From contig MCFE01000327.1 in assembly GCA_002104905.1 (NCBI GenBank), forward strand, positions 30,341-94,340: a stretch of DNA of 64,000 nt, read 5' to 3'. Source of the DNA: Basidiobolus meristosporus CBS 931.73. Taxonomy: Eukaryota > Fungi > Basidiobolomycota. How positions within the stretch are numbered: the stretch's first letter is position 1; each line of letters begins with the position of its first letter. The translations under genes were made by a program, and so were the position numbers. Under the pieces are notes generated by a model. The model did not search any database and was not told the origin of the DNA. It worked only from the letters and a program-made list of their open reading frames with translations. Shown in pieces: positions 35,701 through 61,120 of this stretch.

Positions 35701-36044
35701 ATGGCCAGTTTAATACCTTCATACTGTCAGCTGAGTCCCTAGCTCCACTCAGCTCACAACATTGAAATCTCAGATATCAGCTATTTAGCAGAAAAGCAGA
35801 CTTATATTCTAGGATTTGACTATACTGAAAAGCAATGATACCAAGCCAAGCAATTAGACACAACCAACTTTCATATAAGGTCTCAATAAATGATCTAACA
35901 AGAAATGCCTACTGAAAGCCAACAACATCTCATCAGAAGCACAGTAGAATCCCAGTAGCTTATCTGTTAAGTGCTGAGCTTGAGACTTTTTATAGCAAGT
36001 TAGGAAGGGGTATTTGGTGGTACATGTGCAGTTAACTAAGTTTT

Positions 36045-36392
36045 TGTTGTAAGAGTCTTGGAGATATTGAAGTGATTGGGAGGACAAGTAGATTATGTGG
36101 TTTTCACTTAATGATTTTTTGAATGCAAAAGTAGTATTTATACTTTTACATGGTCTTGGCATAAAAAACACGTAGTATAGGTTAAGAAAGATCCCAAGAA
36201 CATGTGTGCAAAATTTGGGGCTGTTTGGACAGCTTTGAGAATTTTCATGTTCTGGGTACCTGGTATTTTGGTGAAAATATTCCAAGTAAATCCCAACAAG
36301 GAATTTGGTCAGTATTCTCTAGGATTTGAAGGTAATGATCTAAGTGACTAAGTTGAGTGAATATTTAGGTGGAATTACAAATTTTTACAACA
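36045..36392 (-). repeat. Copia 3' LTR
   Basis: TGTTGTAAG...TTACAACA; polypurine tract adjacent at 36393-36401. Confidence 0.9.
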
Positions 36393-39300
36393 CTCCCACT
36401 CAGCTAAATGTTCATATTGACTAGTCCTAATTTTAACCTAAGATATTTAAACTTGTCTCTAGCTAATGGTTCAGTACATATGTCTTCAATCATTTCATCT
36501 AAAGGAGAGTAAACTAAGGTAACTTATCTATTCTATATAGCTTCACATATGAAGTAAAGTCTAATATCTATGTGCTTAGTTCTAGCACAAAAATATGGAT
36601 TTCTACCTAATTGTATACATCCTTGATTATCTTAAAATAAAGTAATATGTGCTTTTTGACATAGGCCTAAATTTGTAAAAAGCTTTCTTAGCCACATTGC
36701 TTTTTTTGTAGCTTCACAGGCTGCCATGTACTCTGCCTCTGTGGTAGAAAGTTCTATGGTTGGTTGCTTTCTTGAATTCCTTGAAATTGCTCCTTCACTG
36801 TAAAGAAAGGTGTATCCTGTGGTGGACTTTCTGTCCTCCAAATTTTGTCCTCAATCAGCATCAGAGTATCCCACAAGATTCTGTTCTGAATACTTACAAG
36901 TGTATCTTAAGCAGATATCAGCAGTTCCTGTTAGGTATCTAAAATCTGCTTAACTGCTGCAATATGATCAGATCCATAGTTCTGATTATGTTGGCTGACA
37001 ACTTCCACTAAATATGATATATCTGTACATGTTTCAAGCAGGATATACATCAGACTGCCAACTATAGATTGATAAGAAAAGTCAGGGCTTTCAGATGACA
37101 CCATGCACTCTTGGTTTGGTTGAGTTTTGACTAGGTTAAGGTTTGTCTCCATTGGTGTAGCTGCTGGCTTACAGTCTTCCATTTAGTACTTCTTTAGTAT
37201 ATCTTGAATATACCTGGATTGGCTTAGGGTGATAGTCTGGGTACTTCTGTCTATGGAGTACTTAATCCCTAAGTAGTAACTGAGCTCTCCCAGATCAGAC
37301 ATCTTGAACTCCTTATATAGGCTGGATTTAATCTCTTCCAATGTTTCTAGGTTATTGGTGGCTATAATAAGATCATTCACATATAGAGCTCATATCACTG
37401 GATTTGCTCTATGTGGCTTATAGCATATACTATAGTTGGCATTACTCCTTTTGAAACTCAAAGATTCCAAATAAGAATCTATCTTGCAATTCTAAGCTCT
37501 GGGTGATTGTTTAAGACCATATAGGGACTTTTAAGCTTGCAGACCAAATGGGGGTTATCTTGGTCAACAAACCCATCAGGCTGGTCCATATACATGTCCT
37601 CATCAAGTGCACCATTCAAAAATGCAGCTTTTACATCCATATGTTGTATAAAAAACTTATATTTGGCTGCAATAGCCAATATTAATCTGATGGAATTAAC
37701 TTGGCCACTGGTGCAAAGGTCTCAGTATAGTCAAGTCCTTTTGTTTGAGAGTATCCTTTGGCCACAAGTCTTGCTTTGTATCTTTCAATGTACCATCAGC
37801 CTTGTATTTTGTCTTGAAGACCCATCTGCATTCAATTGATTTTTGGTTGATTGGTAATTTGACTAAGTCCCAAGTTTGATTTTCCATCAGGGCCTGATAT
37901 TCCTCAGTCATTGCAGATCTCCAAACCTTTGTCTGAGGACAATCTAGGGCTTCTTTTACAGTCTGGGGCTCATCAATATGGACTGAATAGGCATAGGCTA
38001 TGTTTGTCCCCTCATTGATATAGTAATTTGGGCTATTTCTTGTCCGATTGGATCTCCAGGCATTTGATACTGGAATGATCACTTCTGGGATATTCCTGTG
38101 CACTGTTTCAAGCTGAACCATGGTTGTAGAGTTCTCTGGAGTGAAAAAATTTTCATAGTTTTGCTCTGATTCAATCCTGACAATTGGTGGACTTGAGATC
38201 AGATTTTTGTCATCATCTGATGTCATTTTTTGTGAAAATTATGAATTTTCATCAAACAACACATTCCTGGACTTAGCCAGCTTGTTTGCTTTGGTATTGT
38301 AGAGTCTGTATGTCTTACTTGCATAGCAGTAGCCAAAGTATATGAATTATACACCTTTTGGCGCAAATTTTGACTGATTTCCAGGCAGTTTCTTGGTATA
38401 TGCTGTACACCCAAATATTCTTAGATGTTCTGCACTTGGTCTGTACCCATACCATGCTTCAAATGGAGTAGAATCACCAAGTACTCTGTTATAACTCCTA
38501 TTTTAGAGGTATACTGCAGTGGCAACTGATTTGGCCCAAGAATCATAGGATAATTTTTGATCATGGATCAAAGATCTTGCCATATCAATTATTGATCTGT
38601 TAGCATGTTCTGCTACTCCATTTTGATATAGGGCAAATGGTCCGGTAGTCTCTTGCTTTAGCCCATGAATTTTGCAGAAGTGGATGAAGAGTTTTGAGGT
38701 ATATTCTCCACCATTGTCAGAGCAAATTTTCTTGATTTTTTCACCAGTTTTTCTCTCCACCATGGCTTTGAGCTCCCTGAGCTTAGACAGAGCTACTTCC
38801 TTTCTCTCCATGAAGTAAACCCATGTGTGTCATGTATCATCATCAACAAAAGTGATTAAATATTTCATCCCACCTAAGGATAAATTTGCATAGGTCCACA
38901 CAGATCTGAGTATATTAGATCTAATTTTTTCTTAGTATTGGTCAATCCAGAGCTCTCAAATCATTGTCTGGCTTGTTTTCCATTTATGCAGGCTTCACAA
39001 TGCTCCAAACTAGCGGGGGGATCAATTTTTACTCCGGAAATTAGCTGATCTTTGATCATTTTGTGCAAATAATCAAAATTGATGTGTCCAAATCTCCTAT
39101 GCCAAAGCATTGGTGTTTCTTCATTCAAGTTACTTATATTGGCTTCCAGATATGATTGAATATAAGCCAACTTGTATATATCTTGATCTCTGATGCCCAA
39201 AGTAATATGGGCACCATTTTGATCAGTGATCATGCAACCAGAATTGTCAAAGCTGAAACTGAGTCCTTCTGCTGTGGCCTTGCTTACAGATAGTAGGTTC

Positions 39301-40361
39301 TTGGCTATTTCTGGTACATAGAGTACTTCATTAAAGATCAGTGTATTGCCTCCTTCACTGCTTCAAAGGTTTACTTGGATGGTTCCTTCTCCCACTGCAT
39401 CAAGTGTTCCATTGTCACCCATGAAAACCTTCTTTATTGGAATTTCTTGATAATGGGTAAGAAGTTCTTTTTGGTGTGTTAAGTGTTGAAATGCTCCAAA
39501 GTCTATATACCACATCTGAGAATCCATGTTTGTGATCATTTTTAGTGCAGATGCAAATAGTCTATCTTCTGTTGTTGCAGCATTTCCATATTCAGGCTTC
39601 TTTTGCTGATTATCTCTCTTTTTGAGACACCAGTCTGATGTGTGTCCTTTTCTTTAGCAGTAGTTGCAAAACAGGTTTCTGTTGCCTTTGTAGGGTCTTG
39701 GGTACCTCCTTTGTTGGTTATCATTGTATATTAAAGCATTTACTTCTTCTTTCTTATTGGTGCCTGATTTTCTTAATTCTTCATCCAGGAGCCTTCCATA
39801 TATATAGTTTAAGGTCATATCTTCAGTTCTGGACTCTAGGACTGATACAAGGCTCTGAAACTTGTGGTCAGGCTATTCAGGATGGTTACTATCACATCCT
39901 CATCAGTAGTTGGTATGTGCATAGATTCCATTTCATCCACCAGCAGGGTAATTCTGTTAATTAGATTTTTCATTTCTTCTCCTGGCAGCATCTTTGCAGT
40001 AAGGAGTTTTTGTCTCAGATACATTTCCTTAGTAGCTGAACATGACTGGCAGGTGGCTTCTAATACTTTCCAGGCATTCTTTGCCATTTTTGCTCTTGAG
40101 CATTGAATTAGCAATTTGTCCTTGGCATTAAAGCAAATGCAGTTAAAGGCACTTTGTACTTTCAACTGGTGCTTTATGGCTTCCTCTCCCACATTTTTAG
40201 GAGGGCATTCTTCTCCCATGACATTATCCCAAAGGCCTCTTTCTTGTAGCAGCATCTTCATCTTTGCCTTCCACACTTGGTAGTTAGATCCATCCAACTT
40301 TTCAGCAGAGGGAAAAATTCCAGTAATAGCAGTAGTAGACATTGCCGAGAGTGACAGCTTA

Positions 40362-40373
40362 GGGCTCATAACC
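40362..40373 (-). promoter_or_regulatory. Half-tRNA (iMet anticodon arm) primer-binding site
   Basis: GGTTATGAGCCC is the complement of GGGCTCATAACC, the iMet anticodon arm, as in Drosophila copia and yeast Ty5 priming. Confidence 0.8.
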
Positions 40374-40722
40374 TCTTGTAGGAGTCTTGGAGATATTGGA
40401 AGTGATTTGGAGAACAAGTAGATTATGTGGTTTTCACTTAATGATTTATTCAATGTAAAAGTAGTGTTTATACTTTTACATGGTCTTGGCATAACAAACA
40501 CATAGTATAGATTAAGAAAGGTCCCAAGAACATGTGTGCAAAGTTTGGGGCTGTTTGGACAACTTAGCTGATTTTCATGTTCTGGGTACCTGGTATTTTG
40601 GTGAAAATATTCCAAGTAAATTCCAACAAGGAATTTGGTCAGTATTCTCTAGGATATGAAGGTAATGATCTAAGTGACTAAGTTATGTGAATATCTAGGT
40701 GGAAATACAAATTTTTACAACA
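40374..40722 (-). repeat. Copia 5' LTR
   Basis: Aligns end to end with 36045-36392 with scattered substitutions. Confidence 0.9.
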
Positions 40723-40999
40723 TTTACAAGTGAATTAAGTGAAGGGTCATTTTGATAATGCTCACAGAATCGTTAATACAACAAAGAGGAGTCAAAATAG
40801 AGTTAATTGGCACTGGAGGCATAAAAAAAGAAAGTAGCAGCATAACAGCAAATATGGCCAATTTGAACACCTGTGAATTGCAGGAAAGCAGAGTATGCTG
40901 ATGCAAGTAGCCCTTCCTTAAAGTGGGGATGTGTATAGCATATACAAGTGCTGGGTCTTTAGTATGTTAAGTATGATGTGTAAACTGCTGTATCTGAGG

Positions 41000-41449: not shown

Positions 41450-41903
41450 TGACTGTGTTAATGCGGAAGGAAACAAAGAGTACTACATGAACTGTATTGA
41501 CATTGTTGTTGATGGCGGAACCCTAGGTGGAACGGTCACTAACCCCAAGCTGATAGTGGTTAACCTTCCTGGCTACCCTACCATCTCCGAATTTGCTTTT
41601 GGTCAGGGAGATGGCCATGAGCTGCTAGATAAACGGCCCATCATCTCGGCCGGGGCTACGGATGGCGGTTCGACTCCTGATCCTACCACCACTTCCACCA
41701 AACCAACTGCCAGCACTAACCCAGGCTCATGTGCCGGGGTAGTCACGTGGAAGGCAAGCTCCTTATACAATACTGATCAAAGAGTGGCCTATGGCGGCCA
41801 TCTTTGGCAAGCCAAATGGTGGATGCAGAATGAAATCCCAGGCCAGCAAGGAGTTTGGACTGATTTGGGGGGGCGTGCTAATTCCGAATTTTGTCTTCAT
41901 TGA
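41450..41903 (+). pseudogene. 5'-truncated AA11-type LPMO C-terminus, linker and CBM5/12
   Basis: VNAEGNKEYYMNCIDI...VVNLPGYP matches the AA11 C-terminal motif; T/P linker; WKASSLY...YGGHLWQAKWW CBM5/12. No N-terminal His-brace region. Two extra G at the end shift DLGAC*. Confidence 0.75.
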
Positions 41904-42309
41904 AACAATAAACAAACCGATTCCACCAAATCATCGTAGAAGTGCATGAAATTGGGATGAGATGAATCGCCATTGCTAATTGGGGTGCATTGTGGTGTAT
42001 TGCCATTGCTTATTCGGATGAGCTGTGGTGTATTGCCACCGGTGATTAGGACGAGCTATGGTGTGTTTTCACCGATAATTGGGAGCAGTAGACGAAGGTT
42101 CAAAGAGAGTCCCGAAAGGTCAGGTAGAGATATTTGGAATAGGAAGGATCGACAAATTCGTGACCATGTCAGCGGATTCCCATAATTGGACTAATTGACA
42201 GTTAGCATTCTTGACATTGATCAGTTCTTTCCTGAGTCCGCACCTCTACATTTGGTAGGTAGCAGCTATAAAAGCTTCCGGACCCTATGGTGTATGGCAA
42301 CAACGAAAT

Positions 42310-43157
42310 ATGCAGCTTACTGGATTTTTGCTCTCCGCCCTCTCCGTTTGCCATCATCCTTGCCCCCACAGTGCTAGCCGCCGATGATAAGGTGATCGTT
42401 GGGTACTACGTTCCATGGGGGAATGTGCAACCCAGCCAGCTTAGCTTCGACAAGGTCACCTATATCAATTACTGTAAGCTCCATTGGGTGGTGATGGCGG
42501 ATCCAGGTTACTAATCTCACATTTCTCCCGAAGGATTCGGGGTGCTAACCGAGAAAAACGATCCAACCAACATCTTCATCGACACTGACTACGATGGGCC
42601 AGCCATCCGTGAGCTAAAGCAACGGGCCGCCGCCAAAGGAGTCAAGGTTCAGATCTCCCTTGGGGATGGACAGGGAGCCAAACGCTCTCGCCGGTCTAAG
42701 TTTCGGCCTTCGTCCCCTACTTTGCCTTCATCAACATCATGGCCTACGATATGAACGGTGGCTGGTTAGCTACCATCGACCCGAACGCTCCATTCGACTA
42801 AGACACCAAGGGTGGAGATCCATTCTCATTCCGTCAAGCGTCCAAGGCCTAGAGCTTCCGAATGCCGTCCAGGTTGTCCGTCAGCCAGATACCACTTAAC
42901 CACCAACATCTAGTGTAACAATGACTTCCACCACTTGCTCAGCTACCAAGCCCACCACCACCTCAGCACCCACCGCGACCCCAGCACTAGGAACCGGTGT
43001 TTGCGATGGAGTTTCCGCCTGGAAATTAACAGTCGCTTACAACAGGACACGAAAGGTAACTTACAACGGTCATATCTGGCCAGTCAAATGGTGGACTCAG
43101 AATGATACTCCCGGAAACAACGGCCAAAATGTGCGGACCGATCTTGGCGCTTGCTAG
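42310..43157 (+). pseudogene. GH18 chitinase pseudogene with C-terminal CBM5/12
   Basis: TATAAAA at 42267; signal peptide with frameshift; KVIVGYYVPW, DKVTYINY; GT-AG intron from 42474; VKVQISLG; INIMAYD; stop codons; catalytic DxxDxDxE segment deleted; CBM5/12 ends DLGAC*. Confidence 0.85.
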
Positions 43158-44421
43158 ATAAGTCGAAGCGAAGGGGGAGCAAGTGCGAACCAATTTTTGC
43201 CTCCCCATCTCTGAAATCACCAACTTGATTCTTTCCTAACTTGGAGCTTAGATTCATTACTTTGTATACTTGTCTCATACATGTCAGCCTGATGGTTGGT
43301 AACATAGTCCTTGTGCTGTTACCAGGTAGTCAGGTCGGAACGCGAATGATTTTGTGAATTCGGCTCAGACAACTGTATAGACAGAATAGCCTATGCTATC
43401 TAAACCTAACTCCATGTCGCATTTATAACTAACCGGCCAAATCAACTAGCACCTCAAATAACTTGATTTTCAACCAACCGGGGATTCTTTCGGGCCACAA
43501 TGGAGTACATGTCGAATCATTCATCACTAGCTATACAATAAAATAAACGACTTTTTCCCGCTCAAATACAGTTGCTGGGATATCTTACAGGAGCAGACAT
43601 ATGGCGCAACAACCATCTTCGACTTGTGACTTTTGCTCAGTTGTACATCAATATCATTGGTCCAAGATTTGCCATTGTCATGACGACCATAGGTCATGCT
43701 GTTGATAGACACTCAAGTGGCGTTTGGCAAACCTTTGATAACTTTCAATCCATTTGTATTTATGAGTCTGAGAAGAGTGTCTCCGTCCGATATTTAGGCA
43801 ATTGGAGACAATGCCACAGTATTTCTGCCACCTTAGTAAATATCTCCCCCAATTAGCTGGACAGTTACGTGGAGACAGCATTCTCTCTCACTTGGCCTAT
43901 TTGATCAAACCCCACACAAAAGGCAACACAAATCTGCTCCATCCTGAGTTGTGTAAGGCTGATAGTCCATGTGCTAATCGTGATGAGTTGTGTAGGTATT
44001 GACCCGGTGGGATTCGAACCTTGAACGATAAGTATGCGACCAATCACTTGGTACTCAACCGAATGGAAATAGAAGATTGGAACCATACGCAAGTAGAAGA
44101 TCCCTACTATAAAAAGTATCCAGCTCATCCACGTTGAGCAAACAAACGAGTATTCCACATCGTCTCCTCCCAATCACCATCACGACTCTTGACGTAATTG
44201 AACGACACATGCTGTCCATTCGCTCTGGGAGCCGCCGTAGCAGTCAAGCTAATAAATACAAATGCTCGAGGTACAGCCGTTAGTATACTGAGAGTGAGAC
44301 AAGGCGCCTATCGTACCAGACTTGAGTTTCTCACACGTACACTAGTAATAGTGATATATACATGATTTCACCTTACCATGGCATGGGAAAAGAGTAGGGT
44401 GGTACAGTGGGCAGATTCGAC

Positions 44422-44427
44422 TATATA
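44422..44427 (+). promoter_or_regulatory. TATA box candidate for the small peptide gene
   Basis: TATATA ~35-40 bp upstream of the ATG at 44461. Confidence 0.4.
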
Positions 44428-44460
44428 GGAGGACTCTTCCGTGCTTGATGTTCAGCAATC

Positions 44461-44625
44461 ATGAAGTTCTCATTCATCGCAATACTCGCCGTCCTCGTTG
44501 CAGTCAACGCAACTCCAGTAGTGGATCCCTCTAGCAATGAAGGCACCCTCGAGGCCCGTGGATGCTGCCATAGATGGGGCTGTGGACCAAACGGTAGCAG
44601 ATGCTGCTACATGGGCCCTTGCTAA
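44461..44625 (+). CDS. 54-aa secreted Cys-rich prepropeptide MKFSFIAILAVLVAVNATPVVDPSSNEGTLEAR-GCCHRWGCGPNGSRCCYMGPC
   Basis: Hand translation (below the ORF-track cutoff): signal peptide, acidic pro-region ending LEAR, 21-aa mature part with 6 Cys; upstream TATA; AATAAA near 44724; CpG retained. Confidence 0.8.
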   Translation: MKFSFIAILAVLVAVNATPVVDPSSNEGTLEARGCCHRWGCGPNGSRCCYMGPC

Positions 44626-44899
44626 TCTGCAAGCCCTTCAACTTTGAATACCAGATGGAATCTAACGAATTTATTTGCATGGATTATGGACAGTGCATTG
44701 AACATGGCCATGAATAACCCTGAATAAACTGTTGTCATACGAGATCTCTTTATTCCCATAGAATTGGATTCCTGGGTCAGGTCATTCGCACATCTTGCCA
44801 CCTAATCGGGTTCTTCTCTTGATTCTAGTCAGGTTGGAAGTTGATCGTACCAAGAAATGCCCCATGAGGACCCTGTGCCATACACGAGGAGAAAGTAAT

Positions 44900-45430
44900 A
44901 TAGAATCACTGCAGCTTCGTAAGCGGCTTACGGTGGTTGCTGGTCTCCAGAAGGGAACCTCCATGTGTTAATTGTGGGATGGCACGACACTCTTGAGACA
45001 GCAGTTGACGGCACTGTGGATAAGTGACCATGCACAGTGCACAATAGACTTGTCCTGTTGGATAGTACCACATTGAGCCATGAGTGCCAAATAGTGCCAT
45101 AGTATACCGGAAAGGCAAAGCAGACCTGTACTTGGCCACATATAGAGAAGCACAGTTTTACATCCTCCTGCAAAGTAGCCCCTGCGCTTCACTTACTGTT
45201 CTGGAGAAAACTCATATCTTGACCTTTTTTTTGGAGTCAATGTTGTGCATGATGAGTAAGAGCTCAGAATGATTGAAGGCATGGACTCAGTACGCAAGAT
45301 CCATGGCACTCTAAATCTAGCTGCAGGGGTCTGTGGCATGTCAACAACATGCATGGCACTATCTTGTCCTACTGGTATCATCTGGCACTGCAAGTGCTTT
45401 ATATCAGTTTTACTCTAGGGTCAATATCTA
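44900..45430 (-). repeat. Unclassified interspersed repeat (same family as 20790-21160)
   Basis: Reverse complement aligns to 20790-21160. Confidence 0.55.
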
Positions 45431-45477
45431 AATATAGTGCCAGATAGCACCAGTAGGTAGTAGTAGTATTTTGCGTA

Positions 45478-45715
45478 GTCTTGGCAAGATAAACATGTAG
45501 AATATGCTTAGGAAAGTCCCAAGAGCATATGTGCAAAGTTTGGGGCTGTTTGGACAACTTTTAGATTATTCATGTCCTGGGTCCCTGATATTTTGGTGAT
45601 ATATTCTAACTAAATCCCAACAAGGAATTTGGCCAGAATTCTCTAAGATTTGTAGACTATGATCCAAGTGACTAGGTTAACTGAATATTTAGGTGTAATT
45701 ACGAGATTTACAACA
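45478..45715 (-). repeat. Partial, diverged copia-family LTR
   Basis: TGTGCAAAGTTTGGGGCTGTTTGGACAAC...TTTACAACA is shared with 36045-36392. Confidence 0.8.
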
Positions 45716-46366
45716 CTGATGCAAAGAAAATATCTCACAACAAAAGGATGTAAAACATAGAGTAATATGTTGCCGTAGATGGATATAAAGATTGAGGTTG
45801 TAATCCGTGTTGCCACAGATACTACAGAGGGACACGCATATGAAAGCAAGCTTCCATTTCAAGGAGTCAAGACATTGCGAATAGTTTATGACCTCTTGTG
45901 CTGCTGATTCCCACCGTTATAATGGTCTATTCCTGCCTAGAATCCTCCACCAAATGAGTAACTCCATAGAGTCGTTAAAGATCTGAATCAGTACGGAAAT
46001 TCTCCAACTTACAAACCTGTACAAGTTGAACTGAATCTATGTTGAGCATATAATCACTGCTCTGACATGTTTACTGAGTGGAGTGGCTGCATGCATATGA
46101 ATCTTGGAGACCATAAAAGGCTATTTTTCTTGAACACTTCAGACACATGGTCAATTTTACTACGGACAGTCCACTAGGTGATCGTTTCGATTTATGCATG
46201 ATTCACGGAATATTGGATAATAGCGCGAATATCTTGTGCGGGATTTACGAAATGTTGGATACCAACTAGAGCAGCCGAAGTCATCCAAAATTTTAGCAGC
46301 CCATCCCATAATTACTTAAAAGAATCTACGCCATATATAGTAGCATCAAGGAATTCGTTTCAACTC

Positions 46367-46528
46367 ATACTTACCTGGCAGGAGCAGTCTGTGATCAAGA
46401 AGGCAGGCTGTTCGTTTTAGAACTTGAGCATTGCACAGCGCCTCAGGGTCTTTAACGCGAACATCCTTCGGGGTGTCTCGGCTGTTAAATTTTTGTTTGT
46501 GGGAAGTGAGCGCTATGCGCCGCCTCCT
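46367..46528 (+). ncRNA. U1: U1 spliceosomal snRNA
   Basis: 5' ATACTTACCTGG; stem I (CAGTCTG/CAGGCTG) with GATCAAGAAG loop (70K site); CATTGCAC U1A loop; ACATCC-TTCG-GGGTGT stem III; Sm site AATTTTTG; terminal GC hairpin; TATA-like element ~30 bp upstream. 3' end approximate. Confidence 0.93.
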
Positions 46529-49500
46529 GCCTCTCCACTATAGCATCAAACTTATTGAATATGAACATTCTTCGGATACATGACTAAAGTTAACAACTCA
46601 GATCAAAGGAATATGCTGCCAATCGCTACTTAATATTAAATTATGCACACCTACTTGCATGCTGGTGTAGTGCAGAGTTAGTCATCTGGTATGGCCTTTA
46701 CAATGGAGCTTTCCACAGACTGCCAACATACAAATATAAATTGAGCTTTCTTGTAAGTAATACTAATGTGGTGAAAGACCCAACGCACTGCAAAGTACGA
46801 AACGCAAACATTAATTTACCCCTAGTTAAGAATGCCGATCAATTAATAACGTTATAAACTGATTTGCTGATTTAAGCGCAATAGTATAAAAAGCTTATTT
46901 TGAATCTAGCAAGTCATTGTCCCAAAATAATCTCTATAACACTTTATCACGTTCTTGTGATGTATATTCACAGTGCCAAAGATTCTTAACGTAGCTTCGC
47001 GAAAGTCCAAGCTTTGAATCGCCTAAATCATTGTTGCCGCAACTAGATTAGAGGTTATATATTTATTTACTGCTTTAGAAAGTTGGCTTGTCTACAACAA
47101 CGGAAAGACTCTGCATTTGAATGTCGGAATTCTAGCGGCATCACCGGCAACGAAGGGCTACTCGGTCTGATGAGTTGCGTACATCTCGGAAGTAGAACCA
47201 ACAGTCTTCTGCTGTATAGGAACTGGGCGTTAAGAATCTACGGCCTCTGATGTAGTGGTTTTATACCCTCACCTGATGACGTATCCCAGGTCAGTAGACC
47301 CATGTAAAGCGAAAGAAAAACATGAGTGAATGCTAACTTGAACAGCGAATGGATGGTTGGCTTTTCATATTCTGACCAAATCGAAATTCCGTGTTGTCGC
47401 AGAGTTCAGCGTGCCCGCAATATCCGTGATATCAACCAATCCTGCTTAGATACAATTCCGATCTGCACCATTGGGACGCTGCTCATATATGGTTAGTCGA
47501 TCCACACGCGTAAACTGGATGTATCTGATCGACGATCGGGTACTGCGCCAATTTGGATTATTGACTGGAAAGCGATTTCCACAGCCGCTGATGTGAATCA
47601 ATCCTGACTGTACTGTTCTAGAGTATTAGCTGCGATATTTAGTGATGTCGCGCTGAGCAGGTTATCCAATTCTTCGGTGTCATGTCAACATAGCTTCTAT
47701 CATCAATGAGTATTTGCAAATCATGGAAATGAAGCTTAGGATATGCACATAATTTAAGGGCAAGCTAAGTAATTATAACACTATCTACCCAAAAATCCTC
47801 AAAAGGTTGAAGGCAAGTGTATTGTAGCGTTTAAGCTTGGCAGCTTTTAAGTGTTGCTGATATAAGATGGAGAATTTGATAGCAAAAGGTAAAGTGGACT
47901 TTGGAAGATGAGGAGTTTTCTGCATTATGACCGGCTCCAATTCCAAGGGTGGTAAGCTAGGAAGCTATACTTTATACTATCAGCCAAGCTTTTGAATACA
48001 ACACTTTAGCCACTTTACCAGCTTGTTGGCTGAATCGTGACAGACCCTCAGAGCTAGGCGCCTTCCCGACTTCCAAAGAAATGGATTTTGGATGATCTGA
48101 ATGCACATACGCAAAGCCAATCGATAAAACACTTACCCTCGGAACGATATAACAATCTTCTTCTCGGCCCTGCTATATCCTAGATATCCAGCAATTCCAG
48201 TGCTTTTGTCCGAGAAGTAGGAAGTTATGTTCAGCCGACCCACGCAGTCTTTTCCTCACGACCATCTCTCCAGTTTGGCTTGCGGGCAGTAAGGAACCAA
48301 AAGTGTGCTATTGAAAACCTTACAGTACTTTTACTTTTATAACATAATACGCAAAGTATCATGCAACTTCCGTCCTCTCTCTTGGGCGTCGTGAATCAAG
48401 CGAGAGGCCGTAGATTTTCCTTTACTAACTTCTGTGCAACAAATATAGGGCCACGTGCCTTGTCTGGATTTGGATCAATGCTTGAGTAATCCAGGGCATA
48501 TATCCTCCTGCTGTTCATCAACAAACAAGCTTGCTGCAAAGCCCACTGTTGGATTCGTTTGTGCATTGAACACTCCAAAAGTGGCCCTGGGAAGTTGCGA
48601 AACCCAATTTGATTAACTACTAGTTATTCCATTGGAGAAACCATTTGCAGGATATTTTTGTATATATGTCCCCGTTTGAGATTCATATTTGTATAATTCG
48701 TGACGCTCTTTTCCAGTACAGCATATCGGTCTGACTGGTCTGTTGGTGTTCGATCTCCAACAGCCTCATCGTAAAACCCCACTGGTGCAGAACATCACCT
48801 GTGTCAGGCGTAACCCCAGATTGGATACTTCTCGCCAAAAACCTAGCCCAAGGAAAGATGGGGAAAAGATAAAAAGCGATGCATGCCATTACTTTGTGGT
48901 TTTCCAGCATGCACAATGAAATGAGTGGTGCCAAAGTACGCCCTATGGTAATCATACCGCTTGGAATGTTATACCTGCACATCACACCAAGAGTGAAAAG
49001 CCCCTTGTTTCCAAACGCAGTCGATAAAAGTGCCGTGGGGCTTTTGAGCTAAATGCCTGTGCTAGTGCCCATTTATGGTAAGAAGGAGAATCTATGCTGT
49101 ACAGATGAAGCCATTGTTTGTGGGAATAGCGCCAGGGCAATGAGCCTCAGAGCCAGCTTATAATGGATGCCACGAGTTCTCAGATATACTGCTATAGGTC
49201 GATATGACTTATGAAATTAGTTCTTTCGACGCAAGTTTCTGGTTTTTGAGTGAGCCGGTTGCTTCACATTTCAAATTCCAGCAGGAAATGGTTTGCCTAC
49301 TACTAGGCCTGAAGTGGACTATCTTACACCGGAGAAACAGCAAATGGATATGGTCCTGAGTTACGGTGCACTGTCTTCTCAAGCAGTAGCTTCAATGGAT
49401 GAGTAGGAGCAAAGCGATACGTCTACCCAACTGGAAAAATATCATAATACGCTACTTGAATGATATGCAGCCAAAATGTGGATGGGATTGGTTTTAATAC

Positions 49501-50297
49501 GTTGAACCATCGGATGAGGAAAATTCCATAACACTCTCCACCGTTATCGTAATCAAACCAGGAAATCATTTCGGTATCGATTTGGTGCTACTACTGAGTG
49601 GCTTTGACGGATGCAAAATCGATTGTATTGAAAAGAAACGCACGCACGCACAGGACAAGAGTATTTGTCGACATCTTGGTGAGCGATTCCTGTTTGTGTT
49701 ACAATCTTCCCATTCCAATCAAATCACATAGAAGGCCTCCACGCAGTTAGCCTGAAACATACGAGTTATGTTTATACAGCTATTCTGCGTGAAATGAAAT
49801 GAATAAGCAAGAAGCCATGTTTATTTGAATGCACACTTAATACACACATGCCATTGATTTGTTGCTACCTAACCACAATTACTGAATATCAACAGACAAC
49901 CAGAAATAGGCCGACTCTACCTAGCGTGTTTCAGTCTATTATTAGAACGTCAAGGGGTGGTAAATTGGGACTGGTGTTTACAAAATAGCGCCATCAGCGT
50001 TACGCAAAGCATACTTAGGATCGACAAATTATGCACATTATGACGTTTTCTTATACGAAATTCATAGCAACGCTTCTGTTGATAGTCTATGGGTCTTCCT
50101 GACCTAACTGGATTCAACGTCGTACGAAGTCATTCGGCGCTCTTCGATGTCACCTAAGATTCGCTTAATGAGAAGACACTAGGATTCAAACCTCTCAGCA
50201 AATGTGGAAGTTGAGCTACTTCTATAAATATAAGAAAGCAGTTGACTCCACTAATCACAAGGTACCATCACCACTTGAGCTTCTCGACAACATCCAA

Positions 50298-50846
50298 ATG
50301 CGCCTCTCCAACGCCATCGCTACTATTGTGCTTGCAACTTCGGTTGTTGTTTTCGCTGTGCCCTCGGTTCCATGCAATCAAAGCAGTGGTGTCTCTTACT
50401 TCTGCGAAGGTCAAAGCTTCTATCAATGCCAAACCTCAACCGGAACCTGGCTCCTACAGAATATCTGTGCTGGCGATTGTTGTGACCTCCCGGCGTATGC
50501 TGCATTTTGCCCTAACTGCAAGAATCAAACTACTACCAAGACTACCACGACAACATCAAACACTACCAAGCCTACCGTCAGTGAAACCATCTCAACCACT
50601 ACTACTAGTACTAAACCGACCACTACTAAGAGTACCACCTCCAAGACCAGTACTACAACTACCACCAAGACAAATCAACCTGACCCTACTGTCGCTCCTG
50701 GTGCCCCATGTTTAGTGAATGGCAGATACGGTTGCAAGGGCTCGTACTTTTTGGTTTGCCAAAATGGTCAATGGGCGGTACAAAATGACTGCGGAGGTAC
50801 CTGTTGCGATATGTTCCAGTATGCGCAATACTGCTACAACTGCTAG
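50298..50846 (+). CDS. Secreted protein with two Cys-rich (CBM19-like) domains and a Thr-rich linker, 182 aa
   Basis: Start MRLSNAIAT at 50298 with TATAAATA at 50223. Two homologous modules (C...CEGQSFYQC...W..QNICAGDCC and C...CKGSYFLVC...W..QNDCGGTCC). The CBM19 assignment is from pattern recall. Confidence 0.8.
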   Translation: MRLSNAIATIVLATSVVVFAVPSVPCNQSSGVSYFCEGQSFYQCQTSTGTWLLQNICAGDCCDLPAYAAFCPNCKNQTTTKTTTTTSNTTKPTVSETISTTTTSTKPTTTKSTTSKTSTTTTTKTNQPDPTVAPGAPCLVNGRYGCKGSYFLVCQNGQWAVQNDCGGTCCDMFQYAQYCYNC

Positions 50847-51149
50847 TTATAATCAAATCAACTCTTGGGATTCTATAATGAGGTTTATGTGCCTGTGTAT
50901 GTTCAAAGAGCTAACAACAGATATCTAGGAACTATGTTGTAAAGGCACTTCACTTTGTACGAATGCACGATACTTGATGCTTAAAAATATCTGTAGAAAC
51001 CCTGGTAAATAAAACACCCCGCACTCTGCTACTAGTTGGAATTTCGTTTCTAGGAGGCAATCGCAAAATGGTGTAGCGCCTATCTACCAAGAGCAAATTG
51101 TTAGGAGATTAAGCCTATGCAATGCCTCTTTTACCATCATGACAAGTGC

Positions 51150-53330
51150 CACCTTTATTTGAATCCAAGCCTAATATCACTCTTTGCTCTATGCCTCTAT
51201 CCATTATAATGCATCCAACCACATATGGAAGTGCAAATATAGGTTATATTGTGACAGAACATATATGCTATGTCACGACTTTTAACCATCAGGAATTAGT
51301 ATTGGTGCCACTGGTAACAAATGCATCTGCAAGTACACAAGCTTTTGGCTCCTTCCTAAGCATGTGTTTGCCTTACCAAGATCTTGAAGAAGTATAAATG
51401 TTGTTTTATACCTAATGAAATATTGAATGATTACCACTTACTCTACTGGCTCTCCTAATTGGCTACAATTACTTCACAAACTTCTACAGCCAGCTATGAG
51501 CCCAGGAGAACACTCTTGGGATATATTTCTACTCCTCAAGTGACTACAAGCATTGGCAGATTAATTGATGCAATGGAATCCATAGGAGTGCAATCTATGG
51601 ATTAAACTATCATAGCTACCATCCAAGAGTCCTGCCAGTGTTAAAATTGGGATTTTTGTCAAGTACTAGAAAATATGGAAATATGTTGTACATAGAGTTT
51701 ATGCTCCATATATGACAAGAAAATTCCTGAACAACTACATTAAATATGTATCCCAACAATAAACAATAATTGTGTACAATGATCTGCAAACATTTTGAAA
51801 GAATTCTTTTGGTACTCTGCTAGTGTATTACTAATTTGTTGACTTGATTTTTGTGAATGGTAGACAGCAAGGTCTACTAAGAGTATTGACAGTTTACTAA
51901 TTGGACTAGATAGTGCAATACTTACTGCTAAATACCAAATATCAGATTCATCATACTTGAGAGATGCATACATCCTAGAAATGATTATATACCGGAAAGA
52001 GAAGCTTCCAAGAAGTTAATATTTCATTTACACAGGAGCTCAATGTGGCGGTAATATTCAATCTTTAATGAAGATATGATAAATATAACTAATGTTGAGA
52101 TAGCCTCCTTATGCACTTGCAGTTATAATATACTTAGACTTTAGTAGATATACATGCCATGACAAAGAGTATTATAATCTTATTCACATTGAAGGCTTCT
52201 ATGACTGCAAGATATAGTTAGGAGTAACAGCTAGGAGCTTGTGGAGTACCTATCTTGCCACAATGATTCTTGCTTTCAGGTGTGCTCCAGAATCTTGTCT
52301 AATAGGAAGGAAAGAAAAGCCTGCTGCAATATTCTGAGGAGTATTGGAAGTGATGTGGAGAACTAGATGACTTACATGTTATTCACATATAGATTTATTG
52401 ATCAAATATATGGTATTTATACTTTTATATAGTAGAGCAGACAAATGTGTAGAGTCTGTTAAAAAAGGTCCCAAGAATATGTGTTCAAAGTTTGAGGGCA
52501 TTTGGACAACTTTGAGAAAGATCATAATCTGGGTACCTGATAATTTGGTGAAAATATTCTAAATAAATCCCAACAAGAAATTTGGTCAGGACAAAATGCT
52601 AATCAAAGAGTAAGATCTATGTTACCAAGTTAACATGAATATTTAGGTGACAACTTAATAATTACAACAAATCCAAGGTATGTGGCAGAGACTTAAGCAG
52701 GTAGAGTTGTATTTTTAGGTAGATAGGGCCATCTAAAGGTAATGACTTAGCAATGGAAAGCTGGGGATTGTTCTTCTGGAGATATTGATGGATGGTCTGG
52801 GGGTCTTACTGGGCATTGGAGAGGATTGTGATTTTATTGGCACAGAGGGAAACTAGGTAGTCAGCTGAGAGTCTTGGAAAGTCATTCAAGGATATGAAAC
52901 ATTGAATAGGGCCCAGCACAGAGCCTTGAACAACACTATTAGCAACTGTGAATACCACTGATTGCTCACTTGAGTGCAGAATCCTTGCTTGGGGATCCAG
53001 AAACACAGACTAGATTGGATCAGAAGCATGGATTGGTAGTTTCTGGCTGAGTGAGAAGAAGTGGAAAGTATGAATAGACTTTTGTGTAGCAAAAAGAGGA
53101 ATGATAGTTTCAGAAGCAGAGGAGTAGTCAGAGGTTGGCAAGTCTGAATGAATGGGTAGTAGTAGCTGCTATAACAAAGTTCGACTACCAACCAACTCTG
53201 TTTTTGATTCAAGAGCAGATTCTTTTTGTAGTTGACCTGAAATTGCATGATTTAGTCCAACCTACTGTTCCCTTGATTTATAGCATTAGTTTGGAGTATT
53301 CATTCAAATTTCACTGTAAATCCCTCCAAG
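51150..53330 (-). mobile_element. LINE reverse-transcriptase remnant, interrupted by a solo LTR
   Basis: VVQGSVLGPIQCFISLNDF...SLCANK (52806-53006) is a degenerate GVPQGSVLGP...YADD motif; CpG-poor. Confidence 0.7.
52322..52669 (-). repeat. Old copia-family solo LTR, 348 bp
   Basis: TGCTGCAA...TTACAACA, collinear with 36045-36392; flanks AAGCC/AATCC (4 of 5 TSD match). Confidence 0.75.
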
Positions 53331-53933
53331 GATTTCGACTTGAAGGCAATTCCAGGTAGCAACAAAAATGATGGAAATACTTATTTGGCACCCAAGAAAT
53401 CAGCAAAAATACTTTCTTGATGGATTGTTAGGTAATATCAACAAAGATATTATGCGCCTAGATATTACCTCTGAATATTGTTGATGGAACACCACTCCGG
53501 TGCACTTTGCGGAGGTGCTGCATATCCGATACCAAACGAGATGATCCCCACTCCACTATGGCACTGAATACCTTATAAGCGACTGTTTTTGCATAGAAAG
53601 CTCCATGCCAACTCTCCATTGTTGCAGCCGCAAATATCCTTGCCCCCCCCCTTGGCTTCGTTACTCCACAGGCGAGGTTTGATTTCTCCCAGCTTTTTAC
53701 AGTCTGCTCAAAACGGTCAAGAGCATTAAAAAGCACGTCGACCCCATTGTATGCATCAAGGCCGCGCTTCTTAACCTTGCTGTGTATGAGTGAATCCTTG
53801 GATCATCTTCACACACTCATCAAACCTAGCTTCCTTCCCAGTAGGAATGGCCTTCAGTGAGGCAGGAAATTCTGGCTCATGCCTACGATAAGGTTAGAGT
53901 TCTTCATCAGTTTATGAGCAAAAGAACGCTTAC

Positions 53934-54245
53934 TTTAGAAATGCTCCTTGAGACGTCCAGCGTGGAAAGTCATGCAAGGTTTGAAGATGGGTAACATGCG
54001 GCTCCAAGGTGTCTCCACCCAGAGCTTATTGCGTATCAATCAATTGGTTGTGATACTTGCTAAAGTCGGTGGTGAGATTGAGCATAGTTCCAGGGAACTT
54101 GCTTTTAACGCCCTGACAATATCGGAGTCAGCATTAGATAAATCTCCTCCAGAAAAGACGGCAATCTTTCCTCCTTCAGCAAGCGCCTCTTTATAGAGTC
54201 TTTGAAGCTCAGCTTCCTCTCTCTTCAGATACTATATCAAAGCCT
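53934..54245 (-). pseudogene. Fragment of a periplasmic-type solute-binding protein (ABC Fe3+/thiamine-like)
   Basis: LYKEALAEGGKIAVFSGGD / SKFPGTMLNLTTDFSKYHNQLIDTQ* / HVTHLQTLHDFPRW, as recalled for the 'ABC-type Fe3+ transport' SBP family in fungi and actinobacteria; one frameshift and one stop; ends at a GTAAGC donor. Confidence 0.65.
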
Positions 54246-55059
54246 ACAGCGCATGTTTAATTGTGTAATAAATACCTGCGTAAACAGCAACGACATTTTG
54301 CACCGGTGCATCTATAAAAGTCACCTTGTAGCTCAGGAAAATATATTCAACCATGCAACACTTCAACAAGACTTTAACTGTTTGTACGTATACTACAACC
54401 TGAATCACTTGAGATCAGTACCAATTCTAATGAAAGTGAAGCCTCTTGGCCACAGAGTGGATCCATGTTCAGGTCTATGATTGGACATGGAAATTACTCG
54501 GCAGGGAATATTGTTGAACATTCTGCTAGCCAGCCCTTTATAGATTTCCGCTTGGCCAAGGCCACTTTTACTTGTCACGAGCGTATGTTTCACGCAATTA
54601 TAAGACCAAAGATGTTGTGCAACACTATTCAGATCAATCCAACTCACATTACTAATTAACATGATACGCGCAAAGGTGAGCAATCTCATCTTCAGTTGGT
54701 GTCAGTAGATGACTATACGCAGTTCCATTGCAATATCAATGATATGCATAGGAAAGTTGTACAACTCATAGAGCAAACCAAACTAGCGTTACAGGAGCCG
54801 TAAGGTAAGAGTAGCGCAGAGAAGATAGTTTCAAGATTCACTAAAATTATAGATGCCAATATGGATATCAGGCCGCGGATTTGATGAACTCCAATCCACC
54901 CTGTTTACCATGTTGACCACCAATTGTACCACACCACACTTGCCTCTGTTGCAGGCGGCAAGCATGACCACTTTATTTCCAAATGCAGGAGGATGGTTAG
55001 AAACATTTCAACACGAGCAACAAGGAAGCTTGAACAATCCATGAGGCACTATGTTCAAT

Positions 55060-55995
55060 GGCTAGGTCTTCTTACGGCTATGTCAGCTGCAATGCCTCGG
55101 CAACTCCGGGAATTACCACTATTTCCTGAATAGTTGGTCTTTGCAATGGCTGCCAAAAGTTTAGATATGAGACAAAATGTCAATCCGGTCGCTATTACTA
55201 ACCTCGGGGTCAAGCATCCTGCGAAGTAGACGTAGCATAGATTGAGGGTAAATGAGAGGGATTTCTGGAGGAGGCTTCAGCTTCATTTGCTTGAGCAGTT
55301 CCTCCTGGTTGTTGGCATGGAACAAGTATTTTAGGCAGCAGAGCTTGTACGACAGCAGCCCCAAAGCCCATATGTCCACCTTATTTGAATATGGCTAATT
55401 TTGAAACATCTCCTATATAAGTAGCAGACTTGGTAGGATATGTATTGAGCGCAACTAAATACCCACTGGCGCCGTATAGAGCGGAGTCTAAGAAGATTGG
55501 GTTAGCCTGATTCAGTGACCATGATTCCATACACTTACTCCAACAAATGAACATGCGACAGATCTTTGGGCAAGACTCCGGTACAAGCCAAAATCGCCAA
55601 GCTTATAATTATTATCTGCGGTGATGAAAACTCCAAAGAATTAGTCATTGTCATGCCAATGATCACTTGTCGTACCACTTTCTGGCTTGATGTCCCGATG
55701 GACAACCATTGGTGACTGCAAATGACACCAGTGCACGGCATTGACCACACTTTTTCTGGCCGCACTCGACAACTTTTTTTTCAACACCAATGTTAGTGCA
55801 ACTTTCTTGGTATCATGGTGAGAGCTCTGTTACCTATTCTCTCGGAATTCTTTGATGAAAAAGGCCAGATCCCGGTGCCCACAATATTCCATGACAATGT
55901 AAAGCAGTTCTCTTGCAGCATCGTGGACATATTCCTCAATGTACACAAGGTTCGGGTGCTTTACTTCACGCAACAACGGCAAACTCTGATATAAA
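55060..55995 (-). pseudogene. Intron-containing NEK/NIMA-like Ser/Thr kinase pseudogene
   Basis: Exons encode REVKHPNLV...LYIVMEYC, HRDIKPE, YKLGDFG, FVG|TPLYTAP|EMFQN*PYSNKVDIWALG...RMLDPE|PLQRPTIQEI, with GT-AG introns and an in-frame TAG. Confidence 0.8.
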
Positions 55996-57899
55996 TCTCT
56001 TAAACAAAGATCGATTATCGCAGTAACATGACTCTTTCAATACAAGGCTAACCAATTGCTTAACAAGCTTGAATACAACGAAATCCAAGCATGAATCTTA
56101 CATCATATATTCCCAGTCATAGTTGCACAATCCTAATTACCTGCATCATTACGAACACTTCTTGCATTTCCATAGGCATCACACACCCTAACAAGGTTAG
56201 TGTAGTGACTTTCAACATTTATATGTACATCTCTTATTAAGTTATTAACCGGCGTGTGTAGGAATCTAAATGGAAATGCCATAATTGTGCAATACAATAC
56301 AGTATTTGCATTCTTGTTGAAGTGTACGAGAGACTTTACAGTACTCAAAGGTTGTTACCGACTCACTGTTCATACCAGTTGTCATATTTGGCACTCCTCA
56401 CCTGCATCAGTAGCCTGATAAAATCAACCAATCTCAAAAAATAGCCATGTGTATTGATGGCCAATGCTTCCTTCTATCAAGTGCCAAATGTCCACAAGGT
56501 ATGCTGTGTACCAGCTTTCTTAAGGCCCAGATTTCACTCCACTCCGGCTTAAACTGACTGGTTGCAAATAAAGTAGCAGTGGAAAAAGAGCAACCAGCTA
56601 AGGTGCTTGAGAGAATGAGCATATTGCAAGTTCCGAGCAGGACCATAGTGCTGCATCTGCAAATCAGGTCTCTAGCTGGGTTTTCTAAATGGCGGCGCTC
56701 ATTTGGTACAAGCATACACTGTGCACCCTGGTATTTAATGGCAGCCGGTATCTTGGTAATACAAGGTTGACATCATCACTACTGAACAAAGATTGACAGG
56801 TGTTCATCTTGATTGTGTATAGATAGCCGATTAACAGCCCCAACTAACTACTTCACTGTTAATCTGCGCACTCTGGTGACGGCAGCAACTAGCCGCTGTC
56901 GATCTGCGCACTCCAGTGAGAAGGGTCAATTGGCTTATATATGATTGGCGGTATGCTATTCATATTGTAGGTGTGACTTCGTGGTAGGCTAATGGAATAG
57001 GAATCGTTGAATCACCATGTGTTTCCCAGCCCTCTTCTATTCAGCGTACTCGAATGCTTCAAGACTGGGGCCAACTTGATACTTCAAATTCAGGCAGTGT
57101 TCAGATCATCGTACTTTCTGGTAACGGTAACAAACACCTGTTGCAACAGTGGGACATAAATGAAGCAATCGTTGTTTATATGATTCTAATATTATAACTG
57201 GGGTAAAGTAGCTTGCAAATTAAGGTTGTTGATGTTTTGAATTAGTATAGGGTGACTCAATGGTGATATTTATCTTAATATATAGGTTGCCAATCTAAGT
57301 ATTTCTTATCACGGAAATATCTAATCCTCAAGTGCTTGTGAGCTGAGTCTTTGTACGTCTTTTGGTGGCCACTATAGCCATGAGCTGGTGGCTCAGTGAT
57401 GATGATTTGAGGCTTTTGCTGCTTTGACTGATGCGAAATCATATCTATGGCATCAAATTAGTTTAAATCCAATTTTGGGCTGATCTCTACTTGTAATGAG
57501 TGGACAAAACGCTTTGCCCACCGTTCAATAGTTGCTACTGCACAAGATGTGTTTGCTTTATTTTGATATCTCTACCGCTGCAATCCATATACCCTTGATG
57601 TTATGTACCTTGCCTTCAAGCATACACTTGATCTTAACTTGGTTAATCAATGTAGCAATAATGACAGACAAATGTAGTGTATTATAGATCGATTAGATAT
57701 TGTGGTGATTATGAGTCATTAAATCATTAAATTTTCTCAGTGAGATCGCCGATCAGGATGATTCTTGTCAGTGTGTTGGCAGTTGGCTCAACTCTAGTGG
57801 AGGCTCGAATTGCAACACTTACGGCTCCACCGGGAACTGGTTTATCACAAACAAGGTGACAAACTGAATGAGTTATGGTAATTTATTGGATTTGGCATT

Positions 57900-58100
57900 T
57901 GCCAGTCTACGGGCATGCATCAGTACATTGCGTATCTTCCATAGGCTCAGTGAACTGATCAGCGCATTTATCGCCACACTGAATGTCTTCCATAGATTCT
58001 GTGTACTCAGTATCCTGGTCAGAGCACCCTTCAACACAATGGGTGTCCATTACGGGTGCTGAATACTGGGTGTCTTGTGAGGGCTGAACCATGAGATATG
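57900..58100 (-). pseudogene. Truncated copy of the acidic secreted protein gene
   Basis: VQPSQDTQYSAPVMDTHCVEGCSDQDTEY matches the internal segment of 58275-59345. Confidence 0.8.
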
Positions 58101-58274
58101 ACTTGTTATAGTGATAGACGTAAGCTTAATAAATAAGAATACTATCAACATTCATTGTCCAAGTTCCAACATTGTGTTTGCAGTATGATAGTTTGCAAAT
58201 TAAATGTGATGTTTCAAGCTAATATATAGTCATTTCAGATGATGTATTTATTCATAATACGTAGGTGACCACTG

Positions 58275-59345: not shown

Positions 59346-59654
59346 CTTCAAGTTCAACTGAATACATTGCTTCATGCCCGAGGGAATATATATAGCATGG
59401 TAGGCTATATAATATGGTTTGGATATCGATGGAGGCAACAGTGTAAATATGCTAATGAATTACGATATTGCTAGATTGTAAGTGTGCTTTTGAACAGTCA
59501 TCAATCGTCCAATTGCTGTGTGGTAGCTGGTTATCATGATGAATGCATGATAAATAAATAAAAATACTATAAACACTCGTTGTTCAAACTCCAATATTAC
59601 GGTTGTAGTACGGCAGCTTGGTTGCAAATAATATTGAGATTTCAGAATCAGTAT

Positions 59655-61102: not shown

Positions 61103-61120
61103 TTAGGGTTAGGGTTAGGG
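61103..61120 (+). repeat. (TTAGGG)3 telomeric repeat tract
   Basis: Perfect three-unit tract at the boundary between gene-like DNA and the module array. Confidence 0.9.

Follow-up and report, generated by a model that had tools for sequence, protein, structure and literature searches.

The stretch of DNA analyzed here, referred to as the window, comprises 64,000 nucleotides of Basidiobolus meristosporus CBS 931.73 and carries on its forward strand a reading frame for a 54-aa prepropeptide, which opens with the ATG at 44461 and closes with the TAA at 44623-44625 (Table 1). The first-pass annotation, made from the letters alone, had described an unannotated precursor ending in a six-cysteine 21-mer, with a TATA box upstream and an AATAAA downstream. 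This description was borne out: translation gave the identical 54-aa sequence with six cysteines in its last 21 residues, both elements were located, and the NCBI gene calls for window 40298-60846 place nothing at the ORF. No further start codon occurs in frame upstream of the ATG back to the previous stop, and an A is present at -3. In the signal segment, M-K is followed by a hydrophobic core of 13 residues and then by V-N-A, which precedes T-P, with a mean Kyte-Doolittle hydropathy of 3.4 across 11 residues of the predicted signal peptide, and the six cysteines at the other end are arranged as CC-x4-C-x6-CC-x4-C. The GC content of the ORF is 54.5%, compared to 44-46% in its flanks and 52-58% in confirmed genes of the window.

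Six or more cysteines within 21 residues are found in this ORF alone among the window's 290 ATG-initiated ORFs of 40 aa or longer, and a strongly hydrophobic N-terminus is found in only three of the 290: this ORF, a true secreted chitin deacetylase and one other. Order-3 Markov simulation produced two ORFs with both properties, loosely defined, in 300 simulated windows (about 0.007 per window). By the Markov statistic alone, an ORF of this kind is rare per window and a few per genome are expected by chance; a chance origin is excluded because homologs exist, and not through this statistic.

Table 1. Coordinates of the peptide gene, of other features in the window and of related features at other loci.
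Feature	Location	Coordinates	Strand	Basis or remark
TATA box, TATATA	window	44422-44427	+	39 nt 5' of the ATG; direct sequence reading
Single-exon CDS, 54-aa prepropeptide including TAA	window	44461-44625	+	ORF, homologs and dN/dS
Predicted signal peptide, residues 1-17, cleavage after V-N-A	window	44461-44511	+	hydropathy, conservation, -3/-1 rule
Pro-region, residues 18-33, ending in L-E-A-R (residues 30-33)	window	44512-44559	+	motif conservation
Predicted mature 21-mer, six Cys	window	44560-44622	+	nine invariant columns, lowest pN/pS
AATAAA polyadenylation-type signal	window	44723-44728	+	98 nt 3' of the stop; direct sequence reading
Secreted chitin deacetylase with CBM18 (hevein-type) module	window	24172-25323	+	convergent with the next
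Secreted chitin deacetylase with CBM18 (hevein-type) module	window	25453-26523	-	convergent with the preceding
Copia-type LTR retroelement	window	36044-40731		gag, RVT_2, terminal repeats at both ends
Short annotated gene with CBM5/12 chitin-binding tail	window	41487-41903	+	
Short annotated gene with CBM5/12 chitin-binding tail	window	42287-43157	+	looks like a GH18 chitinase remnant
Annotated secreted protein, 182 aa	window	50298-50846	+	no Pfam match
Telomere-type repeat, exact three-unit CCCTAA	window	61103-61120	-	2.9 kb inside the contig end
Chromosome-end duplicate of window sequence	L007	6210-14074		87-98% identity
Chromosome-end duplicate of window sequence	L003	7616-18648		87-98% identity; begins at window 48098
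P0007, 141-aa public model	L007	10001-11397		chimera
Copy of the copia-type element	L007	15321-20006		90% identical
Degraded family copy	L005	8152-8310		
Degraded family copy	L009	11300-11459		
Degraded family copy	L011	5273-5419		
Family locus	L005			three copies, one degraded
Family locus	L006			one copy (B. ranarum)
Family locus	L007			one copy (sister duplicate of the window gene)
Family locus	L009			two copies, one frameshifted
Family locus	L010			three copies, one unannotated
Family locus	L011			three copies, one frameshifted

Genomic surroundings and the duplicated segment

Around the ORF, the NCBI gene calls consist of GH18/CBM5_12 fragments upstream and the 182-aa protein downstream. 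The fragments lie 1.3 kb upstream of the peptide gene in the window and in L007 alike; the counterpart of the putative chitinase remnant in L007 is a 326-aa GH18 gene accompanied by a separate 58-aa CBM5/12 gene. The 182-aa protein is made up of two similar six-cysteine modules and a Thr-rich linker, and its paralog ORX94830.1, which is more than 90% identical, is labeled a CBM1 domain protein in UniRef. Further off, the chitin deacetylase pair sits in a GC-rich island (50-56% GC), and the copia-type element lies 4 kb upstream of the peptide gene. The telomere-type repeat is 16.5 kb from the peptide gene. No telomere repeats were found in the other family loci, and the remaining B. meristosporus copies lie 9-27 kb from contig ends; the term "subtelomeric" is therefore supported solely for the window copy. 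No second family copy was found within the window, and locus L004 of B. ranarum is not syntenic with it.

The window's contig, MCFE01000327.1, shares a segmental duplication with contig MCFE01000194.1, which on the window side takes in 41453-47720 and 48098-59401. The duplicated regions differ by insertions, with two CHAP-domain genes and a lipase gene present only on MCFE01000194.1. The peptide gene lies outside the L003 duplicate. Across 2.1 kb around the gene, substitution divergence between the window and the L007 duplicate is 9.2%, while only 3 of 150 aligned bases of the CDS differ (P = 4e-4 against this background). Two differences fall in the 60 nt 5' of the ATG, giving 5 differences in 210 positions for CDS and upstream sequence together (P = 8e-5). 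Only one change, a synonymous one, falls within the signal and pro parts. The L007 sister has sustained an in-frame 15-nt deletion that removes five residues and one cysteine, leaving a 49-aa product with a five-cysteine 16-mer. The window copy is the intact form, since all other members have the segment deleted in L007.

In the light of the family, the public model P0007 is a chimera. Its first exon is the deleted peptide-gene copy: it starts at the ATG of the sister gene and splices from a GT inside the peptide CDS into unrelated amidohydrolase-like pieces, which have no counterpart in the window; it shares only its first 39 residues with the peptide.

A multi-copy family in two Basidiobolus species

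The 54-aa peptide itself was absent from a collection of 5.8 billion proteins in a word-index search with the single peptide. HMMER, run exhaustively against 1.84 billion representative proteins, returned P0008 (57 aa, E 2e-12) from B. meristosporus CBS 931.73 and P0009 (61 aa, E 9e-8) from B. ranarum, along with P0007, which does not differ from the window peptide over its aligned N-terminal stretch. Using the first alignment as a profile, a further search retrieved P0012 and P0013 from B. meristosporus and P0014 and P0015 from B. ranarum, and tblastn of the loci uncovered unannotated or tandem copies in L005, L007, L009, L010 and L011. Three matches were set aside as chance: the HMMER match P0010, a low-complexity repeat protein; the HMMER match P0011, from a TARA contig with retroelement-like context and three of the six cysteines; and a single profile match in L012, in high-GC DNA lacking the cysteine motif. 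Back-translated scans found no relatives in bacterial or archaeal genomes, viral contigs or JGI metagenomes.

The first-pass annotation had held that a lack of homologs with conserved cysteine spacing would count against it; such homologs exist, and 16 copies were located at seven loci in B. meristosporus CBS 931.73 and B. ranarum. Most stand in tandem arrays, spaced about 1.2-1.3 kb apart in B. meristosporus; seven are annotated, as hypothetical or uncharacterized proteins, and three are degraded. Public annotation thus misses about half of the family copies and fuses one into a chimeric model. One of the degraded copies has neither the ATG nor the GCC triplet, and two are frameshifted between or within the signal and pro parts, which suggests birth-and-death turnover, with assembly errors as another possible source. 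The family appears to turn over in this way, and single copies may be dying. It is multi-copy and undescribed, and to date Basidiobolus is the only genus in which it has been found.

Full-length sequences of eleven members and mature sequences of nine were aligned. The family is defined here by single exons of 54-63 codons, and all eleven full-length members have the same layout: M-K-x-S leads into a hydrophobic core, an invariant Ala stands before [TSN]-P-V, and a pro-region of variable sequence separates these from a C-terminal cysteine motif, with the stop codon directly after the last cysteine or one residue later. In the signal cleavage region Ala17 (-1), Pro19 and Val20 are invariant and Val15 (-3) nearly so, and the predicted cleavage after Ala17 fits the -3/-1 rule because of this conserved Ala and Val. 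The motif [ILV]-E-[AG]-R directly precedes GCC in ten of the eleven members, the exception being P0009, which lacks the Arg. All eleven have the six cysteines at the same spacing, GCC-x3-GC-x3-G-x2-CC-x4-C, and nine columns are invariant in the nine mature sequences (G1, C2, C3, G7, C8, G12, C15, C16 and C21). This Gly-rich scaffold has conserved aromatics at mature positions 6 and 17/18; in all, two or three such residues are present in the mature peptides, whose net charge ranges from about -1 to +2. The window ORF carries every invariant column of family alignments A3 and A4. Outside the coding sequence, TATA elements were found at -39 to -48 in all nine B. meristosporus copies examined, the upstream DNA of these copies being otherwise diverged; over the family as a whole the element falls at -39 to -75, with the B. 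ranarum copy in L006 as an exception. An AATAAA or ATTAAA follows 15-105 nt 3' of the stop in all 12 copies examined.

The closest intact paralog of the window peptide is P0013 (78% identical), whose 21-mer differs from that of the window copy at three residues. Comparison of the two genes gave a dN/dS of 0.14 with synonymous sites saturated, and in the mature part a pS of 0.74 against a pN of 0.10. When all pairs were summed, the mature part had a pN/pS of 0.29 and the signal one of 0.44, and the pro-region, at 0.55, is the least constrained. Of the five aligned L005/L010 genes, four encode an identical 21-mer, and these genes differ at synonymous sites and in pro-region amino acids; because the 21-mer is kept while its surroundings vary, it is the constrained product. 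Judged by these substitution patterns, purifying selection acts most strongly on the predicted 21-mer. The division into prepro and mature parts made in the first-pass annotation is accordingly supported, since the signal layout and the [ILV]E[AG]R junction are conserved family-wide and the mature 21-mer is the most constrained segment. In the family tree, two subtypes, GCC-H and GCC-Q-W, are separated with a split support of 99/100, and each is present in both species. With the root placed on the branch between them, both subtypes would predate the species split; we propose this tentatively, given the long branch of the H-type row from B. ranarum.

Resemblance to known peptides and domains

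The window peptide has no match in Pfam, and across the eleven members only sub-threshold Pfam matches were obtained (PF02950, DUF7155 and Defensin_propep), the best of them being to PF02950, Conotoxin, in one of the eleven members at 17.5 bits against a cutoff of 25.1. A PDB profile search with the 21-mers returned no chain at E 10, hevein-domain chains included. In the ESM Atlas the best score was 0.78 for the whole peptide, with no usable match for the 21-mer, and the AlphaFold2 model from the 11-row alignment (pLDDT 49, pTM 0.15) was unusable.

A likeness to alpha-4/6-conotoxins such as AuIB had been pointed out from the spacing GCC-x4-C-x6-C. AuIB is an alpha-4/6-conotoxin with CC-x4-C-x6-C spacing (PMC9781320), and the first four cysteines of the Basidiobolus peptide conform to it, the first 15 mature residues matching G-CC-x4-C-x6-C. 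Conotoxin precursors also share the layout of signal, pro-region and short, cysteine-rich, toxin-sized peptide, and belong to a tandem-duplicated gene family. The first-pass annotation was right, however, to limit the likeness to spacing, as the Basidiobolus peptide has six cysteines and no sequence relation to conotoxins. Alpha-conotoxin framework I has four cysteines (CC-C-C) and two disulfides, whereas the Basidiobolus family has six invariant cysteines (CC-C-CC-C); the loop-1 Ser/Pro and C-terminal Gly for amidation of alpha-conotoxins are both lacking; and no conotoxins appeared in the HMMER search of 1.84 billion proteins or in the PDB searches. In the literature consulted, CC-C-CC-C occurs only as part of larger frameworks of 10-14 cysteines.

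The precursor layout has closer parallels in fungi. LxxR is defined as an expanded Kex2 motif (PMC8528282), which agrees with the earlier proposal of a pro-peptide cut after an LxxR-type site, here the L-E-A-R of the pro-region. Like the Basidiobolus peptide, K2PP fungal proteins such as SnTox3, ToxA and the SIX effectors have a signal peptide and then a short pro-domain (PMC8528282), rich in disorder-promoting residues and with an LxxR-type end, ahead of a disulfide-rich mature part; they are likewise lineage-restricted, multi-copy and fast-turning. The differences lie in size and origin: K2PP effectors have folded domains of about 60-200 residues and come from Dikarya plant pathogens, whereas the Basidiobolus mature part has 21 residues, no sequence relation to them and predicted processing, and belongs to a zygomycete gut and soil fungus. 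Dikaritins and other Kex2-processed-repeat RiPPs have repeated cores and a clustered modifying enzyme, while the Basidiobolus genes encode a single core. No gene family is common to the neighbors of the five B. meristosporus loci, which makes a RiPP-type cluster or a dedicated partner unlikely. A functional precedent, set beside the family by description only, is sillucin of Rhizomucor pusillus, a 30-aa peptide with four disulfides that is active against Gram-positive bacteria (PMC8583803); it is similarly tiny, highly knotted, cysteine-rich and made by a zygomycete, with eight cysteines in 30 residues compared to six in 21. A survey of zygomycete secretomes counts small secreted proteins in bulk, and the Basidiobolus family is not described in the part of it consulted (PMC9391592). 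By its sequence features the family is an undescribed one of a general kind, that of small secreted cysteine-rich fungal peptides with predicted Kex2-type processing, and is unusually small with a framework of its own.

Proposed function and alternative readings

The gene and its family are established by comparative sequence evidence. We consider it probable that the window holds an intact, intronless B. meristosporus gene of a Basidiobolus-only family, whose product would be a Kex2-processed, secreted 21-mer with three disulfides and a specific external target. The gene would be transcribed from its own TATA promoter, and the 54-aa product, as its sequence and conservation suggest, would enter the ER via the 17-residue signal peptide, with cleavage after Ala17. 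The six invariant cysteines would form three disulfides, a Kex2-type convertase would cut after L-E-A-R33, as predicted from the conserved LxxR-type motif, and a rigid, glycine-rich 21-residue peptide would be secreted. This peptide would most likely act by binding a specific external target, either on a surface or in another organism, and would then serve in defense or antagonism in gut, dung or soil without disrupting membranes. Target binding is favored over membrane disruption because the 21-mer is not strongly cationic and has conserved aromatics and glycines, and a role in antagonism or defense would fit the tandem amplification and turnover of the family. Against this explanation, the gene has remains of transposons next to it and a chromosome end close by, and its sister in L007 has lost a cysteine; the missing Arg before GCC in P0009 and the three further copies that appear degraded also speak against it.

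The reading that the ORF arose by chance, or is the first exon of a longer spliced gene, is barely credible. The simulated frequency would allow a few such ORFs per genome, and P0007 does start at the same ATG in L007 and splice onward. Against these points stand the eleven full-length members in two species with their uniform stop at the cysteine motif and the low dN/dS at saturated synonymous sites, and P0007 has nothing in common with the family beyond its shared first residues; nor is any P0007-like model annotated in the window. It is more of a concern, while still unlikely, that the family is real and the window copy silent or becoming a pseudogene in subtelomeric, transposon-rich DNA. 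The nearby telomere-type repeat and copia-type element, the deletion in the L007 sister and the degraded copies elsewhere would all be consistent with this, as would the fact that the annotation pipeline called the same-size paralogs P0013, P0008 and P0012 and skipped the window copy. The reading frame is nevertheless intact, as are the start context, the TATA box and the AATAAA, and relative to the L007 duplicate the CDS and its 60-nt promoter have been kept far better than the flanks, with no amino acid change in the signal and pro parts. RNA-seq of B. meristosporus CBS 931.73 exists (PMC7466969).

The most concrete alternative as to function is chitin binding, in which the family would be a minimized hevein/CBM18-like binder that keeps the CC-x-x-aromatic-G-C-G core and the C-terminal aromatic-G-x-C and, for example, protects the wall of the fungus against chitinases of hosts that eat insects, or attaches to cuticle; we rate this as rather improbable. 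The 21-mer has a core-like motif resembling that of hevein/CBM18, in which CC is followed by two residues, an aromatic residue, G, C-G, six residues and C, together with a C-terminal aromatic-G-x-C, and its exposed aromatics, conserved at positions 6 and 17/18, would sit on a Gly-rich disulfide scaffold. Within the window, the strongest local similarity is shown by the CBM18 cores of both chitin deacetylases; for P0008, the alignment with the CDA2 module covers CC..YG.CG...D.C....YG.C and has a shuffle P of 0.013. Over eight pairs, however, composition-preserving shuffles gave P values of 0.013-0.36, which are not significant after multiple testing, and PF00187 has no match in the eleven members at E up to 1 or with the 21-mer at E up to 10, nor did any hevein chain emerge from the PDB. 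Hevein has eight cysteines (C-C-CC-C-C-C-C, core CCSxxGxCG), of which the first two are absent from the Basidiobolus peptide, whose loop 1 is one residue shorter. The GH18/CBM5_12 fragments next to the gene would also suit a chitin binder, but the window and L007 represent one duplication and hence a single observation, and the neighbors at other loci are unrelated. Quite doubtful, in turn, is a secreted signaling peptide, serving as a pheromone or as a quorum-type cue, or a metal binder that uses its thiols, in place of an antagonistic binder. Several gene copies encode an identical mature peptide, as is common for pheromone genes, and six cysteines in 21 residues, including two CC pairs, could bind metal; yet no receptor, transporter or modifying gene is common to the loci, there is no CaaX or other pheromone hallmark, and passage through the ER favors disulfides over free thiols.

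Small secreted cysteine-rich proteins are common in fungi, and what sets this family apart is a 21-residue, six-cysteine product with its own framework, under purifying selection in two species and encoded in tandem arrays, which in the searches made here matched no described family and no solved structure. Basidiobolus inhabits the guts of amphibians and reptiles that feed on insects and is able to infect humans, and to our knowledge its secreted peptides have not been studied. To a further proposal we attach only a low probability: that an early-diverging fungus has independently evolved a conotoxin-sized, three-disulfide CC-C-CC-C peptide acting on a defined target of another organism. If so, candidate targets would include a receptor or an ion channel in those insects or herptiles through which Basidiobolus passes, or chitin, in which case the peptide would be the smallest known hevein-like binder. 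The 21-mer is small enough for chemical synthesis, making binding, antimicrobial and chitin assays feasible. Were the proposal true, the family would constitute a new scaffold class of bioactive mini-proteins from this fungus.
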